Shown here: positions 2,776 to 56,450 of the stretch, one piece after another
Position numbering within the stretch: the stretch's first letter is position 1
Layout of the letters: each line of letters opens with the position of its first letter
Source of the DNA: Parasitella parasitica NRRL 2501
Taxonomy: Eukaryota; Fungi; Mucoromycota
Assembly: GCA_025201805.1 (NCBI GenBank)
Contig: MU619397.1
Span: forward strand, 1 to 64,000
Direction: 5' to 3'
Length of the DNA stretch: 64,000 nt
Position numbers and translations under genes: made by a program
The notes under the pieces: model-generated
Database searches by the model: none
What the model was told of the DNA's origin: nothing
Seen by the model: only the letters and a program-made list of their open reading frames with translations

Positions 2776-3370
2776 TTATAGACTCTTGACAACATTTTCT
2801 ACCAAGCTAACATTCAAACCTGTAGTGTCAGGTTCGACAAACAGTTTTTTGACTTTGCCATCTTCCAAAATGGCAGCAAATCTCTTGAAACGACGATTGC
2901 CCAAAGCCGCAGATGCATCAAAGTCTAATTCCATAGCTTTTGCTAATTCGCCTTTGGAGTCAGCTAATAGGGTTACTTTATTGTCTGCTTTATGAGCTTT
3001 GCCCCATTCGGCCATGACAAACGCGTCATTAACAGCGACACAAGCGACCAATTCGACGCCTTTCGATTTCAATGCCTCTGCTTCCTTGATATAACCTGGC
3101 AAATGTGTTTTGCTGCATCCAGGTGTGAAAGCACCAGGTACGCCTATACTTTTATTCAGTATAACTGGCGTTTAACCCACCGCTATGCTGCTGCTACTTA
3201 CCAAACAAGATGGACTTTTTGCCCTTGAATAAGTCTTGGGTCTTTACTGTCTCGCCAGGCGATTTCAGTTGAACTTCAATGTTGGGGATAGTATCACCTT
3301 CAGCAATAAGTAAACGACTGTTATTGGTAAAGCTTCTTCGTTGAATTTGAGAAAACGTAGTGCGCAACAT
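2776..3370 (-). CDS. PRX5: Peroxiredoxin-5-like redoxin with mitochondrial-type presequence (2 exons)
   Basis: Exon 1 (3370-3202) encodes MLRTTFSQIQRRSFTNNSRLLIAEGDTIP. A GT-AG intron spans 3201-3144. Exon 2 carries GVPGAFTPGCSKTHLPGY (peroxidatic Cys) and AVNDAFVM. Confidence 0.92.
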
Positions 3371-4082
3371 TTTACGAGGAAGAGAAGCAAAAAGTGCGTA
3401 TTTAGGGCAGGATACGTTTATAGCCAGAATCGCACAATCTCCGGCATAACAACTAATTTAGGCATCAGCCCTAAAAGATGTAAATGCAGACCTAAGGAAA
3501 ATGCGCTAAAGGTCACCTCTGTTCCAACATTTTGCCATCCTTCTATTTATGCCAATACTGGTATGTTTAAGCACGTACCATAGCGCCTCACTGATTTCGG
3601 AACGCCAACAGGGTTTATTGCTGACAAGATATTGCTGACAAGATATAGATTCTCGGCTTTATCAAATATTCTTGATTTGCACTACAAGATATTTGATCTT
3701 TATGTACGAATTTTATGGGGTGTGGATGTTGAGATAAATGAAAAAGCTCGTCATTTTCCAATATATAGCGTATAAATCACGCCAAATCTACACGAAATTG
3801 AACTTGTGAATGTTTCTATAAGGTATAATAGCAACCAATGACAGTAAAAGACTTTTTAACAGAGCTCTAATCACCATTAAAAATGGCAATTATATGCATC
3901 TACTCAATGATACACATGTACAATTGCAGCGTGAGTCAAGAAAAAAAAAAAGCTGGCAGATTGAGCAAGATAAGATATTTTGCTTGATTGTAGTGCGTAT
4001 AGAAATAAAAGTTAGTAATTTCATCGCTTCCATCAGCCTTTTTACTCTCTTTTCTTTCCATAATCTTTGAGGCATCCCCGTC

Positions 4083-5400
4083 ATGAGCTCTCAACAAACT
4101 TTTCCTATCGACAATGAGCTGTTCCAATTCTATATTCATTACCAATTACGCCTAGTCAGGAAAAGCATGTTGTTATGGGGTGATAATAGCGAAAAGGATA
4201 TTATTGTCAATATCTTGAATAATTGTCAGCATGTCGAAGGAAGTACGGCAACATATAAAGCAACACACACAGATAACCTAATTTTACTTTAAAAATAGAC
4301 ACGCTGCGTACAATTATTAACGAAATATTCGATAATTCAATTCTCAAGCGTACTCATCACAAAGACAAAAGTCAAAAAACTACTGACGACGTAGTCGTAT
4401 TCAACGGAAGGAACACAAACACCAAACAATCAGCAGTGTCTACTGATGAAGACGGTGAACCGTTATATCTTGATTCGAGTCATGAAGAGCCTAGAATCAA
4501 AAAAGCCAAAACTTCAATTACAAGTACGCAAACGTCTACCAAATTTAAAATGGAAAATTCAAAAGGTAAAAGAGAAATCTCCAAACTTCTTGAAAGGGTC
4601 TTGAACCAAGATGCTTCCAAAGGTTTGTACATCGAGCCATTAAATCATAAGAAATTTGCCAACTTGACATTTTGAGCCTATTAGAAATAAATTGTATGGT
4701 TAAATATAAAGAAAGAAGCAGATATGTATTCCACACCAGAATGAAAACCTTGCGCGACAGTTTCAAAATCAATTATACATTTCCTGGAGAAAATTCCTCT
4801 CCTAGCACACCCAACTGCACATTTGAGGTGTTCAAATTGTTCGACAATAGAAGCATTTTAGGTCAATGTCAACTTAACCTTACGTCGTATCGACTTGGAA
4901 AGCTAAGAGAAAAAGAGGAGCAAGTGTTGCCAATTACGACAGTTCGAAACAACTATGAAAAGTACCACAGCTCTTTGAGGGGTATGTATCATTTGGAATA
5001 AAATCACTATGTCTATTCAATCTTTGTCTATTGAAGAAAGCTTAGACAATCCGACATTGTCTTACCGCGAATACGCAAGGTATTGTAAAATACTTGTTAA
5101 GGTTGTTGAAAGACTTGGAGCGTACCCGCTTTTCTTCCCAGAGATATTGCCTCCTAGTACCTTCAAAAAGGTAATAATGCAGTGATTAGGGAATGTTTGA
5201 TATAGTCATTAAAATCTGACTAGGTGGCTCAAGATGATTTCAGCAAGATTCAAGACTATTTTGACGAGCTATTTTCAGAATTCAGGGACATTGCAAGATT
5301 TGACGACAACGATGATTTGATCTTGACAGAAAGTGCTGGGTCGAGCAACTACTCTGATGAAAAAGACGCATATCATAGCCGATTCTTGAAAAATGAATGA
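4083..5400 (+). CDS. Hypothetical protein, copy 1 of a tandem family (5 predicted exons)
   Basis: GT-AG introns join ORF pieces sharing IDNELFQFY, ERSxY, YRxGK, YAR, GxYxxFxPExL and SRFL blocks with the gene at 6166-7475, at equivalent intron positions. Confidence 0.7.
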
Positions 5401-52557: not shown

Positions 52558-54087
52558 ATGGCTGAAAATAACATCAAGGGCATTTTATCTGAGTATGATA
52601 ACGAATCTGTTGTTACCAGGCAAGCAATTCACCGTGGTGGTCGAAAATCCATCTACATGGCCGGTGTTGTTGCTGCTGGAGGTGGATTTGTCGTTGGCTT
52701 TGATACAGGCGCTGTATCCGGTACCATGGTATTGCAGCCATTTATCGACAAATTCCTAAATGTGGATGCCACTTATCGCTCTGCTCTTTTGGTTGCCATG
52801 ATGTTATTAACTGCCACTATTGGTGGTTTAGCTTCCGGCAATGTATGTGGTAAGTATTTTGTGTAGCACACATCATATGTATATCAAACTAAGCTTGCTA
52901 TAGATTACATGGGTCGTAAAAATACAATTCTTCTTGGTACGAGTGTGTTTGGCATCGGCGCTCTTTTTGAAACAATCGGTTATAACTTTGGTTTACTCAT
53001 GGCCGGCCGTCTTTTTGTTGGTCTTGGTGAAGGTTTTTTGACCAATGCTATCCCACTTTACCACACCGAGATCGCTCCTCCCGACATTCGTGGTCGACTG
53101 ATCACTCTATTCAGTGCCATGTCATCTGTGGGCACTATTGTTGGTTATTTCGTCAACTTTGGCACTTCTTACCTTGGCAATGACTGGGCTTGGCGTACTC
53201 CATTTTTGGTTCAACTACTCGTTTGCATCTTTTTGCTGTCTGCGTATTTCTTGCCCTATTCTCCTCGTTGGCTCATCGATAAAGGCCGTAAAGAAGAAGC
53301 TTTGTTGGTCCTTGCTAAGCTCCATGAATCGACAGTTGAAGATCCCGAAGTTCGTAACGAATACCAATGTATTTGTGAAGAGATCCGAGTTGAACGTTCT
53401 TTTGGTACTCGTACCTACGTCGAGTGTTTCCGCGGCACTAATTTGAAGCGTACACTTTTTGCCTTATTCACTGGTAACGGTGCTGCGTTTACTGGTACTT
53501 ATTCCATCACTTACTATGCTCCTTCTATTTTTCAGCAAGCCGGGGTGGGGAGCACTTCCATTTCACTAGCTACGAGCGGCGCGAGCAACATTCTTGTCTT
53601 GATTGTCACCTTGTTGACAGTATTATTCATCGACCGTTTGGGTCGGCGTGGAATTTTTGCTTCTGGTGCTATTGTTATGGGTCTCTCCATGTACATTGTT
53701 GGCGGCCTCTTTCAAGGCTACAGTTTCATTGACGACGAAGGCAATGTTGGGCTATCAAACAAGCATGCTCAAGCTTGCGTTATCGCCTTTGTGTTTATTT
53801 TCCAAGCAGCTTATGCTTACAGTTGGGGGCCTGTTGCCTACATTTATCCTGCTGAAATCTCCAATATGCGTACTCGTGCTAAAGTTATTGCTCTTGCATA
53901 TGGCTTGAACTGGGCGATCGGTATCTTTATGACGTTTGTCATGCCAATCTTTATGAACAACACCATCTATGGCGGCTATTACTTTTTCGGTGCCTGCTGT
54001 AGCATCCTCTCTATCGGCAGTTTCTGGCTCCCAGAAACTAAAGGAAAAACTTTGGAGGAAATTGATCGCATGTTTAATCCTCTCTAG
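52558..54087 (+). CDS. MFS sugar-porter family transporter with atypical binding site; predicted thiamine/precursor transporter
   Basis: GFDTG, GRK, PLYHTEIAPPDIRGRL, PYSPRWL, IDRLGRR and PETKGKTLEEID; one intron at about 52850-52903. The substrate is inferred from the linked TPP riboswitch. Confidence 0.9.
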
Positions 54088-54304
54088 CGTTGAAACGGGT
54101 ATATTTCTTTTATCTCAATCAATCATACTAACCAAACTATCTTTAAAATAAACATTCGCCATAGTTGTCCTGCCCCCCGCCTCTGGTCCTCACCGGGTCT
54201 CTGGTCATTTAGCTGTGGACTACTGCTTACTCTTTTCGGTCTTATGGTGGGGATCCATGCGTTGGGATGGTAACTTGCTATTCTTTCAATTGTACTAAAA
54301 AAAA

Positions 54305-54393
54305 GGACAATCGAGGGGTGCTAGACCTAACGGTCGGCTGAGATTATACCCTTAAGAGCGGACCATGTTAATGCATGCGACGGCCACGAGTTC
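54305..54393 (+). promoter_or_regulatory. TPP (THI-box) riboswitch aptamer in a predicted 3' UTR intron
   Basis: P1 GGAC..TCG/CGAGTTC; P2 AGGG/CCCT; P3 GCT-GACC[TAAC]GGTC-GGC; conserved CTGAGA and ATACCC; P4 CG/CG; P5 CATG[TTAATG]CATG followed by CG. Confidence 0.92.
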
Positions 54394-54720
54394 CCATTTG
54401 TACAATTGCTTTTTTTCTCATTTTTATGCCAGGTAACGTATCATCTTGCTACACATTCTCTCTGCGCTTCCACATATAGTTGGTGGTCTTTGTTTGCTTG
54501 ACCATTGTTTTTGAATTTGGCATTTGGCATTTGACAATTGACATTTGGGCTTGTCCTAATCTCATGCTCTTATGGTATCTCTCGTTGGGATCCTTGTTTA
54601 TAGTTGCTGTTGGTCGTATCAGCATGTGTGTTTGTGTGTGTTTCTCAATAAAAGTTGTGATTTTCCAGTGGTTTTTTTATTATAAATAGTGGTTTATTAA
54701 ATGACGAATAAGTTACTATT

Positions 54721-56450
54721 CTAATTGTTTTTGATGGACGGACAAGAGTTTGTTCGTAAATTGACATTCTTTGGTGCAAAACCTTGCTCCCAAGCCAGTA
54801 AATAATCCCAATGAGGGTTGACATGATCTTCAGTCTTGTAAGTCCAATAAAACCATCCTATACCAGCTTCATAGGCATCCATTTGCTTCTCCATGAATTG
54901 CAACAAGAAATTTTTGTATTCAGGTGTAAACGCTGTCCAGTCGTCGACACCAACACATGAGCATGTTGGACACACAGGCGCTGTTGGTGCTCCTTCTTGC
55001 TCAAGAGTCCCGTCAAATCGAGCGCCCAATCCTACGCCATTCAGATATTTGGCACAATCATTTGTAGCGACAGAAAATTCGCCCACCATCGTAGGACCCA
55101 CATGGATAGACGCTTCCCCAATGTCTTTTTTCCATGCTGTACAGGGAAACTCTGATTGCTGGGTTCTGGGCATCGATACAAGGCCATTATTAAAGATCAT
55201 GTATAAATGAGTTTCCAAAATAACGCGTTCGTATTGCTTTCCAAAAAAGCCATTCCATGCACTAAGAGGGAAGAAACCATCGTGGTAAGTTAACAGGGGG
55301 CCACGACCAGGACCGAGCAATTTGCGGATAGCATTGTAGCTTTTTTGATACCAATTTTTAACCTTGACAGCAGGGATTTTCATCATCGCAGGTTCATTCA
55401 AGACGCCAAATAAAGGGACAACGTTAGACCACTCGGGTTTATCAAAGAATCTTATCATTTCAGTTGCAATTTGAAGAGTTCTATCGCCATTGGACTCGCC
55501 CTCGGTACCGTTCAAGAAGCCGACCATGCCTGATTTACCAGAGTGATTCCAGCCATTTTGTGACCCAGGAGCAGTATGCAATTCTACCATGACACGGAGC
55601 CCATACTTTCTAGCCCACTGAATACCTTGTAGCAAGTATTGCCAGGAGATAAATGGAACATACGGCTCATCAGATAAAACTTGAACTGCCCAATGTCCTG
55701 TAGGGATACGAACATGATTGAATCCCATTTCGGCGATCCTCTTGAAATCGGCTTCCGTTACAAACGTATCATAATGATTTTGTAATTGCCTCTTGGCTTC
55801 CTCGGGTCCCAGTTTCTCGCATAGACTCCATTCGTCGACTACTGTTTGATTTGGACCAAATTGTTCGAATATTTTTGGCGTAATAAAGGGCTCAAGTACA
55901 AGCCATCCGCCTAAATTAATGCCACGGATACGATCCTCGGCGTTGTACCGAAAAGGCTTGTTGAGGGCAGGAGTGAAATTATGGGCTTGAACTGAATCAT
56001 CAAAAGGATCTTTGTAGTCTGGCGATCCAGGTGTAATAAGGTGAGGATTGCTGCCTGGATTGTTACGGGATGATCTTTGCTGATGCTCATCTTTTGCACT
56101 AATGCCAAAGACGACCAGTGGGATGACAATTGCAGCCAAAACGAGCAATGTTATAGACGTTACAAGTAATGCCACTCTAGTTTTGTTTGACTTGAATTTT
56201 CCCCATAATGTGGTGGGAGCAGAAGGAGGATTAACACCGCCAGGAACACTAGAATGTGTTTGATGTGTCGAAGTATTCGCCTTGATTTTCTCATCAATGT
56301 CAATGTGATTGATGCTTGGCTCTCTTGATAAAGCCCAACTCACTGGATCTGCTTGTTGCTTGTAATAGCTCTCTTGTGAGTTTATATCTATGGTGGTAGT
56401 ATTAATGTTTATATTCAGTCCACATATATAAAACTATGCATACTTTGCAT
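54721..56450 (-). CDS. GH5 glucan 1,3-beta-glucosidase with N-terminal TM anchor (ExgD-like)
   Basis: RGINLGGWLVLEPFITP, NHVRIPTGHWA, HTAPGSQNGWNHSG, LNEP (acid/base), VGEFS (nucleophile) and GWFYWTYK. A tiny first exon at 56450 is inferred. Confidence 0.92.

Follow-up and report, generated by a model that had tools for sequence, protein, structure and literature searches.

A rewired sugar porter with a putative thiamine pyrophosphate aptamer downstream of its coding sequence in Parasitella parasitica: a candidate importer of thiamine or its moieties

Positions 1 to 64,000 of contig MU619397.1 from the fungus Parasitella parasitica NRRL 2501 (assembly GCA_025201805.1), in the following called the window, carry a two-exon gene for a sugar porter of the major facilitator superfamily (MFS). 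Past its stop codon and on the same strand lies a candidate aptamer for thiamine pyrophosphate (TPP), and the next gene beyond the aptamer, encoding a GH5 glycosidase, runs convergently towards the porter (Table 1). The porter, the changes in its predicted substrate pocket and the putative riboswitch in its 3' untranslated region (UTR) are the subject of this analysis.

Gene structure and the substrate pocket

The two exons of the gene were searched separately and never joined, and an annotated protein from Mucor fragilis, P0001 (491 aa), was used as the full-length stand-in for the fold. Exon 2 is 96% and exon 1 is 92% identical to P0001, whose continuous reading ...GNVCDYIGRK... across the equivalent position supports the splice junction. 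Exon 2 matches the Pfam family Sugar_tr (PF00083) with an E-value of 8.7e-82 and 275.8 bits (cut-off 22.3) over profile positions 72-452 of 452, and its homology extends as far as the C-terminal PETKGKTLEEID motif; exon 1 gave a weak match to profile positions 3-68. The Pfam matches were limited to Sugar_tr and MFS_1, and homology to the Thi7, Thi9 or Dur31 families was not found.

An AlphaFold 2 model of the orthologue P0001 (pLDDT 87.8, pTM 0.86) had its best Foldseek matches in STP10, STP6, GLUT3 and XylE, with TM-scores of 0.80-0.86. The porter shares with STP10, XylE and GLUT1/3 the fold of 12 transmembrane helices (TM1 to TM12) plus an intracellular helical bundle, and the gating salt-bridge motifs. 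It differs from them in overall sequence (about 25-30% identity) and in the replacement of Q177, Q295, Q296, N301, N332, W410, N433 and the TM1 Phe (STP10 numbering), and the plant Lid domain is absent from it. An initial annotation of the window had described the cytosolic sugar-porter motifs as intact. This is borne out by an alignment of 74 relatives, in which the residues of the gating motifs GRK/GRR and PETKG and of the E..R salt bridges, namely R133, E153, R160, R219, D341, R345, E415, R422 and E475 (P0001 numbering) are invariant, the one caveat being that the family motif PESPR reads PYSPR in the window protein. As in the H+ symporters STP10 and XylE, the porter has an Asp/Arg proton pair, and these equivalents of STP10 Asp42 and Arg142 (D42/R142) show no variation in any aligned row of the clades described below. 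Judged from the sequence and the modelled fold, the porter looks like a working alternating-access proton symporter with an altered cavity.

Glucose in Arabidopsis STP10 is contacted by Phe401, Asn332, Gln295, Gln296, Asn301, Asn433, Thr437, Trp410, the Gly406 backbone and Gln177, with Phe39 and Leu43 also placed at the glucose and Asp42/Arg142 forming the proton pair (PMC6345825). The pocket of the window porter was mapped by HMMER alignment to this protein, for which a glucose-bound structure exists, exon 2 and TM1 being aligned separately. Seven of the eight polar glucose-binding side chains of the STP10 set are replaced, Thr437 being the sole survivor. Where the sugar-coordinating signature has Gln in TM5, QQxxGxN in TM7, Asn in TM8, Trp in TM10 and Asn in TM11, the window porter reads S, AA..Y, V, Y and G. 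The substitutions in TM5, TM7 and TM10 had been noted in the initial annotation, and both their coordinates and their residues are exact; to these are now added the losses of N332 (to Val) in TM8 and of N433 (to Gly) in TM11 and the change of F39 to Val in TM1. TM8 has an Asn in SGASN, out of register by three residues and ahead of the N332 position, which is specific to the orthologues called clade A below. The exchange of F401 for Tyr is a conservative change, and besides Thr437 the residues Gly406, Asn429, Asp42 and Arg142 are retained.

Table 1 Features of the porter locus and of related loci in the same genome. Positions without a contig label refer to the window.
Feature	Position	Strand	Description	Basis
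Porter gene, two exons	52558-54087	+	Encodes MFS sugar porter of about 491 aa
Exon 1	52558..52849	+	ATG at 52558; 97 codons + 1 base; TM1-TM2	Translation
TM1 GFVVGFDTG (exon 1)	52690-52722	+	Val at Phe position; proton-site Asp retained
Intron, 54 nt	52850..52903	+	GTAAGT ... CTATAG	Direct sequence reading
Exon 2	52904..54087	+	TM3-TM12; stop TAG 54085-54087	Pfam match
Mid-TM4 Glu, GLGEGF	53029..53031	+	STP10 V149 position; 7 residues past proton-site Arg; clade A only
TM5 FSAMSSVGT	53110..53136	+	Ser (53113-53115) for sugar-binding Gln, STP10 Q177
TM7 NGAAFTGTYSITYY	53476..53517	+	Ala-Ala for Gln-Gln (Q295, Q296); Tyr for Asn (N301)
TM8 NILV	53587..53598	+	Val (53596-53598) at sugar-binding Asn, STP10 N332
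TM10 YAYSWGPVAY	53812..53841	+	Tyr for Trp (STP10 W410); F401 to Tyr
TM11 NWAIG	53908..53922	+	First Asn = STP10 N429, retained; Gly for glucose-contacting Asn N433
Candidate TPP aptamer	54304..54403	+	217 nt past porter stop	RF00059, 36.7 bits, E 1.4e-4
GH5 glycosidase gene	54721-56343	-	Convergent; next gene beyond aptamer
Clade-B paralogue	C48:57998-59173	-	52% identical; differently rewired pocket
Aptamer of clade-B porter	C48:57606-57729	-	About 270 nt past stop	48.8 bits
Aptamer of THI4	C95:9194-9301	-	About 100 nt past THI4 stop	50.8 bits

To see how common these substitutions are among sugar porters, 19 sugar-porter paralogues of this genome were surveyed with a profile derived from the alignment, and the comparison with proven transporters covered STP10 and STP6 (solved structures, aligned residues). 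The substitutions are rare in the paralogues and absent in STP10 and STP6. Q295, Q296, N301 and W410 are all lost in three of the 19 paralogues, namely the window gene and the genes on contigs C48 (52% identical) and C62 (46% identical), and among the remaining 16, Q296 is retained in 15, N301 in 14 and W410 in 13. Since the loss is confined to three of 19 paralogues of the same genome, it is beyond chance or the usual drift of the family. The porter is a member of the sugar-porter family by descent, but its function should not be annotated as sugar transport.

Rewired clades and their association with TPP aptamers

A word-based homologue search returned orthologues that are 60-96% identical throughout the Mucorales and in Basidiobolus, here called clade A, along with more distant tiers that are about 50% and about 45% identical. 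In a maximum-likelihood tree of 83 rows, from which fragments shorter than 440 aa were excluded and which was rooted on seven canonical rows bearing QQ and N, all non-canonical rows form one superclade with a support of 100%. Clade A and clade U (Umbelopsis and one Heterostelium sequence) each have a support of 100, and clade B is joined with clade C, the latter on a long stem, with a support of 98.

The pocket positions are conserved inside each clade and different among the clades. Over the whole superclade Q177 is changed to S or T, Q295 to A or T, Q296 to A, S or C, N301 to Y, S, D or V, N332 to V, S or A and N433 to G or S, and W410 is Tyr in 73 of 75 rows. Written in this order from TM5 to TM11, the clade-A pocket is S / AA / (Y, S, D) / V / Y / G together with the TM8 Asn, and that of clades B and C is T or S / T(S or C) / V / S / Y / S; clade U matches clade B but has Asp in place of N301. 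An additional Gln, located one to two turns further along TM5 in place of I184, is common to clades B, U and C. The initial annotation had based part of its argument on the Tyr gained in place of N301, but this residue fails as a clade feature: it is present in 14 of 26 clade-A rows (the others have S, D, T or A) and belongs to the Mucor/Rhizopus-like lineage only. The mid-TM4 position is Glu in 21 and Gln in 5 of the 26 clade-A rows, and is never acidic in the other clades or in the other paralogues of this genome. By helix periodicity, at a distance of seven residues, it would lie on the same helix face as the proton-site Arg, and it may line the cavity, where it would meet and suit a cationic or amino substrate.

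The aptamer of the window was found in E-value mode only, and an Rfam scan of the window at gathering thresholds gave no match. It was accepted despite its sub-threshold score because it is conserved in the orthologues. The blocks GGGGTGC, GCTGAGA, ACCCTT, TAAT and GCG are invariant or nearly so against 11 other aptamers (10 from porter loci and that of THI4 from this genome), and the top scores of the orthologous porter aptamers are 54.4-57.9 bits. The aptamer was assigned to the 3' UTR of the porter because the next gene is convergent, which leaves the porter as the sole same-strand transcript available; strand, distance and the differing neighbours at other loci argue for a shared transcript. 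Upstream of the porter gene the RF00059 scan of the window found no aptamer. By eye, a possible short 3' UTR intron is seen right past the stop (window 54098-54163, GTATAT ... TACTAAC ... CATAG), as is a GGTAAC 5'-splice-like site at about 54266-54275, some 35 nt upstream of the aptamer, and these two putative elements would be expression-platform material.

It is clear from the other species that the window is no isolated case. For clades A, B and U, 12 of 12 loci have a TPP aptamer on the same strand 103-810 nt past the stop, namely those of the window, Rhizopus delemar, Phycomyces, Absidia, Basidiobolus and Cunninghamella for clade A, of C48 in this genome, Phycomyces, R. stolonifer and Absidia for clade B, and of Umbelopsis and Heterostelium for clade U. 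The ends of the complete coding sequences (CDS) were checked at all ten loci from other species, in the window and at the clade-B paralogue of this genome. In the five control loci, consisting of a canonical Umbelopsis porter, two more paralogues of this genome and one clade-C locus from each of two species, no TPP aptamer was found. The co-occurrence of rewired porters and TPP aptamers, proposed as a check in the initial annotation, is thus found in clades A, B and U (12/12 loci, against 0/5 for clade C and the canonical porters). The downstream neighbour genes differ from locus to locus. The aptamer cores are on average 75% identical between porters and 61% identical between the porters and the THI4 of this genome; the porter aptamers are thus closer to one another than to that of THI4, which indicates that gene and aptamer were duplicated and inherited together. 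An approximately unbiased (AU) test marginally rejects the aptamer-bearing clades as one group excluding clade C (p = 0.036, the group being named post hoc). This favours, though not firmly, a history in which clade C lost the aptamer along its long stem.

Scanning the whole genome with RF00059 gave three credible aptamers, on THI4 and on two porters, all of them at 3' UTR positions. A fourth match on contig C8 (21.7 bits, E 0.9) was rejected as spurious, lying inside a kinesin-like coding region. Because the only other credible aptamer outside the porters is that of THI4, the porter would belong to a very small thiamine regulon. NMT1/THI5 (PF09084, the pyrimidine branch) and an NMT1-type aptamer gave no match in the 450-contig assembly, in which THI4 was found. 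This is suggestive only, and could reflect either auxotrophy for the pyrimidine branch or an assembly gap; should the absence be real, the fungus must import pyrimidine or thiamine.

Proposed function and alternatives

A proton symporter without sugar contacts, combined with a predicted three-member TPP regulon that includes THI4, would be best explained as an importer of thiamine or one of its moieties. Transporters behind TPP riboswitches, bacterial as well as fungal, have repeatedly been shown to carry thiamine or its moieties. On balance the porter is probably an H+ symporter, repressed by TPP, that carries thiamine and/or the moieties of thiamine (pyrimidine or thiazole), and our confidence in any single substrate, be it thiamine, hydroxymethylpyrimidine (HMP), hydroxyethylthiazole (HET) or another, is much lower than in this general assignment. 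The proposal of the initial annotation, that a sugar porter was recruited for the uptake of vitamin B1 or its precursors, is therefore retained in part: the aptamer co-occurrence and the pocket loss speak for it, while the Tyr gain does not, and neither does the aptamer-less but rewired clade C.

In mechanistic terms, a descendant of the sugar porters would have become a proton-coupled MFS importer whose central cavity no longer suits hexose, and would carry thiamine and/or HMP or HET, substrate and direction both being predictions, into the cell. When TPP is ample it would bind the 3' UTR aptamer in the porter mRNA and lower expression, and the same 3' UTR control would act on THI4 and on the paralogous porter of this genome. 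By analogy with plant THIC, this would most likely happen through a change in splicing or processing at the 3' end. Plant THIC and lower-plant THI1 have TPP riboswitches in their 3' UTRs that act through TPP-dependent 3' UTR splicing or 3'-end processing. The window aptamer has the same placement and probably a similar mechanism, with the difference that the plant riboswitches control biosynthetic enzymes and this one would control a transporter.

Several points weigh against the assignment as a thiamine-related importer. The 36.7 bits of the window aptamer are below the RF00059 gathering score of 54.3, and the counts of 12/12 against 0/5 are phylogenetically dependent and may represent one or two events. 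The clade-C pocket is equally rewired and yet has no aptamer, so the pocket is not specific to TPP-linked genes, and therefore pocket rewiring alone implies no thiamine-related substrate. The variation between Y, S, D, T and A at the N301 position is odd for a key ligand contact, or else the substrate differs by lineage, and the assembly in which NMT1 gave no match consists of 450 contigs. In addition, the sole publication on the association of aptamer and transporter reads it as TPP control of sugar transport (PMC11683625).

This published interpretation amounts to a true sugar or polyol transporter that is tuned by TPP status, since TPP-dependent enzymes process imported carbon. Sequence and fold do place the protein in the sugar-porter family. 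Some members of that family with deviant motifs transport non-hexose carbohydrates. We nevertheless find a sugar or polyol substrate improbable: the porter has lost the TM1 Phe and seven of eight polar contacts to glucose, which the 16 other paralogues of the genome mostly retain, a conserved acidic TM4 residue arises in clade A, the TPP-riboswitch transporters that have been tested carry thiamine-related compounds, and THI4 in this genome has the same kind of 3' UTR device. Loss of substrate contacts is also what would be expected of a non-transporting sensor (transceptor) or of a decaying paralogue, for which the nearby aptamer would have no regulatory role. Against this stand the identity of 60-96% among orthologues across the Mucorales, the invariant gating motifs and proton pair, the conservation of the new pocket itself, and an aptamer that has outlasted an ancient gene duplication and is retained in 12/12 loci. 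A long cytosolic tail, as in Snf3 and Rgt2, the glucose sensors of yeast, is absent from this protein of about 491 aa. Taken together, a sensor or a decaying gene appears very improbable.

A pocket that is non-sugar yet chemically uncommitted could also serve some other small molecule tied to TPP status, such as a thiamine breakdown or salvage product other than HMP and HET, a 2-oxo acid or a cofactor precursor, or the protein could be an exporter of a thiamine-related compound. Clades A, B and U share the aptamer despite clearly different pockets, clade C retains its rewired pocket without TPP control, and GLUT9 (SLC2A9), which was among the structural matches, is a precedent for the sugar-porter fold with a non-sugar substrate, urate, although it is an animal facilitator without a riboswitch and with a different pocket solution. 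We regard such a substrate, or export, as unlikely; all the other TPP aptamers found in the genome are on a thiamine gene or a paralogous porter, an importer repressed by TPP would be typical of this switch, and the genomic context with its varying neighbours suggests no specific alternative.

Within the preferred assignment as a thiamine-related importer, the occurrence of two clades with different pockets and the same switch suggests that two different thiamine-related substrates may be involved. Clades A and B/U might split the uptake of HMP versus HET, or of thiamine versus a moiety, the gene and its 3' UTR riboswitch having been transferred together to Basidiobolus and a dictyostelid amoeba, but this more detailed scheme is doubtful at present. 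If true, these porters would be the earliest transporters of HMP and of thiazole to be identified in eukaryotes, and they would provide a molecular basis for the classical pyrimidine and thiazole growth requirements of Phycomyces and 'Mucor ramannianus'.

Relation to known systems and further loci

The aptamer class TPPsw-SUGAR comprises 43 fungal TPP aptamers by annotated sugar transporters, mostly from Mucoromycota (PMC11683625, ACS Omega 2024), and a near-identical aptamer from Mucor irregularis, KK076457.1, is found in the supplement of that paper (PMC11683625). The window locus, with its TPP aptamer adjoining an annotated sugar transporter in Mucoromycota, shows the same association as this class. 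TPPsw-SUGAR and the Mucor THI4 aptamers were assigned to the 5' UTR with Type I regulation (PMC11683625), whereas the aptamer follows a complete CDS in all 12 loci here; and unlike that paper, which is without protein analysis (PMC11683625), we examined the pocket and found the sugar contacts lost. The 12 loci contradict the published 5' UTR position, and the protein analysis contradicts the sugar-control interpretation. Neither sugar nor MFS transporters are mentioned by Mukherjee et al. 2018 (PMC5882874). A literature search for a characterised member of the group (the Gongronella 'hexose transporter') and for thiamine-moiety uptake in Phycomyces gave nothing usable.

Among the fungal thiamine transporters, Thi7 belongs to NCS1. 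PMC5997356, which calls it MFS, describes an SSF domain in Dur31/NCU01977, classes Thi9 as amino-acid-permease-like, and reports riboswitches on Dur31 and Thi9 homologues. Thi7, Thi9 and Dur31 (PMC5997356) are thus members of families other than that of the window porter, in agreement with the initial annotation. Dur31 provides a riboswitch-linked fungal example of thiamine transport (PMC5997356). The window porter is likewise linked in cis to a TPP aptamer, with a proposed role in thiamine-related import, but its family is unrelated to those of Dur31 (SSS) and Thi9 (APC), and its aptamer is in the 3' UTR, not in the 5' UTR or in coding-region introns as in the Dur31 and Thi9 homologues. Thiamine transport by Dur31 is supported by genetics, whereas the role of the window porter is predicted from sequence. 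Orthology of the porter to Neurospora NCU01977 was considered and rejected, NCU01977/Dur31 being an SSF-domain protein (SSS) and not MFS.

A riboswitch-controlled vitamin transporter is a known kind of gene, and the aptamer association is already published; what is new here is the family that was recruited, the rewiring of the pocket and the 3' UTR placement. A requirement for external thiamine or its halves has long been described for the Mucorales and related fungi, and Phycomyces was once used as a bioassay for vitamin B1. We know of no thiamine, HMP or thiazole transporter identified in the Mucorales and relatives, and to our knowledge virtually no carrier dedicated to HMP or thiazole has been described from eukaryotes. 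The locus offers candidate vitamin transporters in a family that is not normally searched for vitamins, and it shows how a sugar porter can be re-tooled, with the engine and the proton site kept and the substrate contacts swapped. Several of these fungi cause mucormycosis. The TPP riboswitch has been put forward as a drug target (PMC11683625), and the actual target of the switch matters for this idea.

Clade C, whose member in this genome lies at C62:19907-21088 (minus strand), has the rewired pocket T/C/V/S/Y/S and a long stem branch; judged from sequence, it would form a third set of 'sugar porters' in the Mucorales that do not carry sugar. The clade-B porter on C48 is followed by a same-strand PHO4 phosphate transporter gene, and this synteny is shared with Phycomyces, Rhizopus stolonifer and Absidia. 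The clade-B aptamer was also considered as a 5' UTR element of the downstream PHO4 gene, but this was rejected, the distance being 107-274 nt from the porter stop against 783-2300 nt from PHO4, and the clade-A loci, where the neighbours are unrelated or convergent, also counter it.

Basidiobolus meristosporus (MCFE01000400.1; outside the Mucorales) has an intron-less clade-A orthologue of about 70% identity, closer than some Mucorales orthologues, with its aptamer 103 nt past the porter stop, and horizontal transfer is possible. In the dictyostelid amoeba Heterostelium album (GL290989.1; positions 3001-5381 of the retrieved stretch) the clade-U porter has a TPP aptamer of 37 bits about 165 nt past the end of the homology. 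Either the gene and its riboswitch were acquired together by horizontal transfer, or Amoebozoa have a TPP riboswitch that has so far gone unnoticed. The stop of the Heterostelium gene is near 4747, and the annotated 565-aa model, which crosses the aptamer, is probably over-extended.

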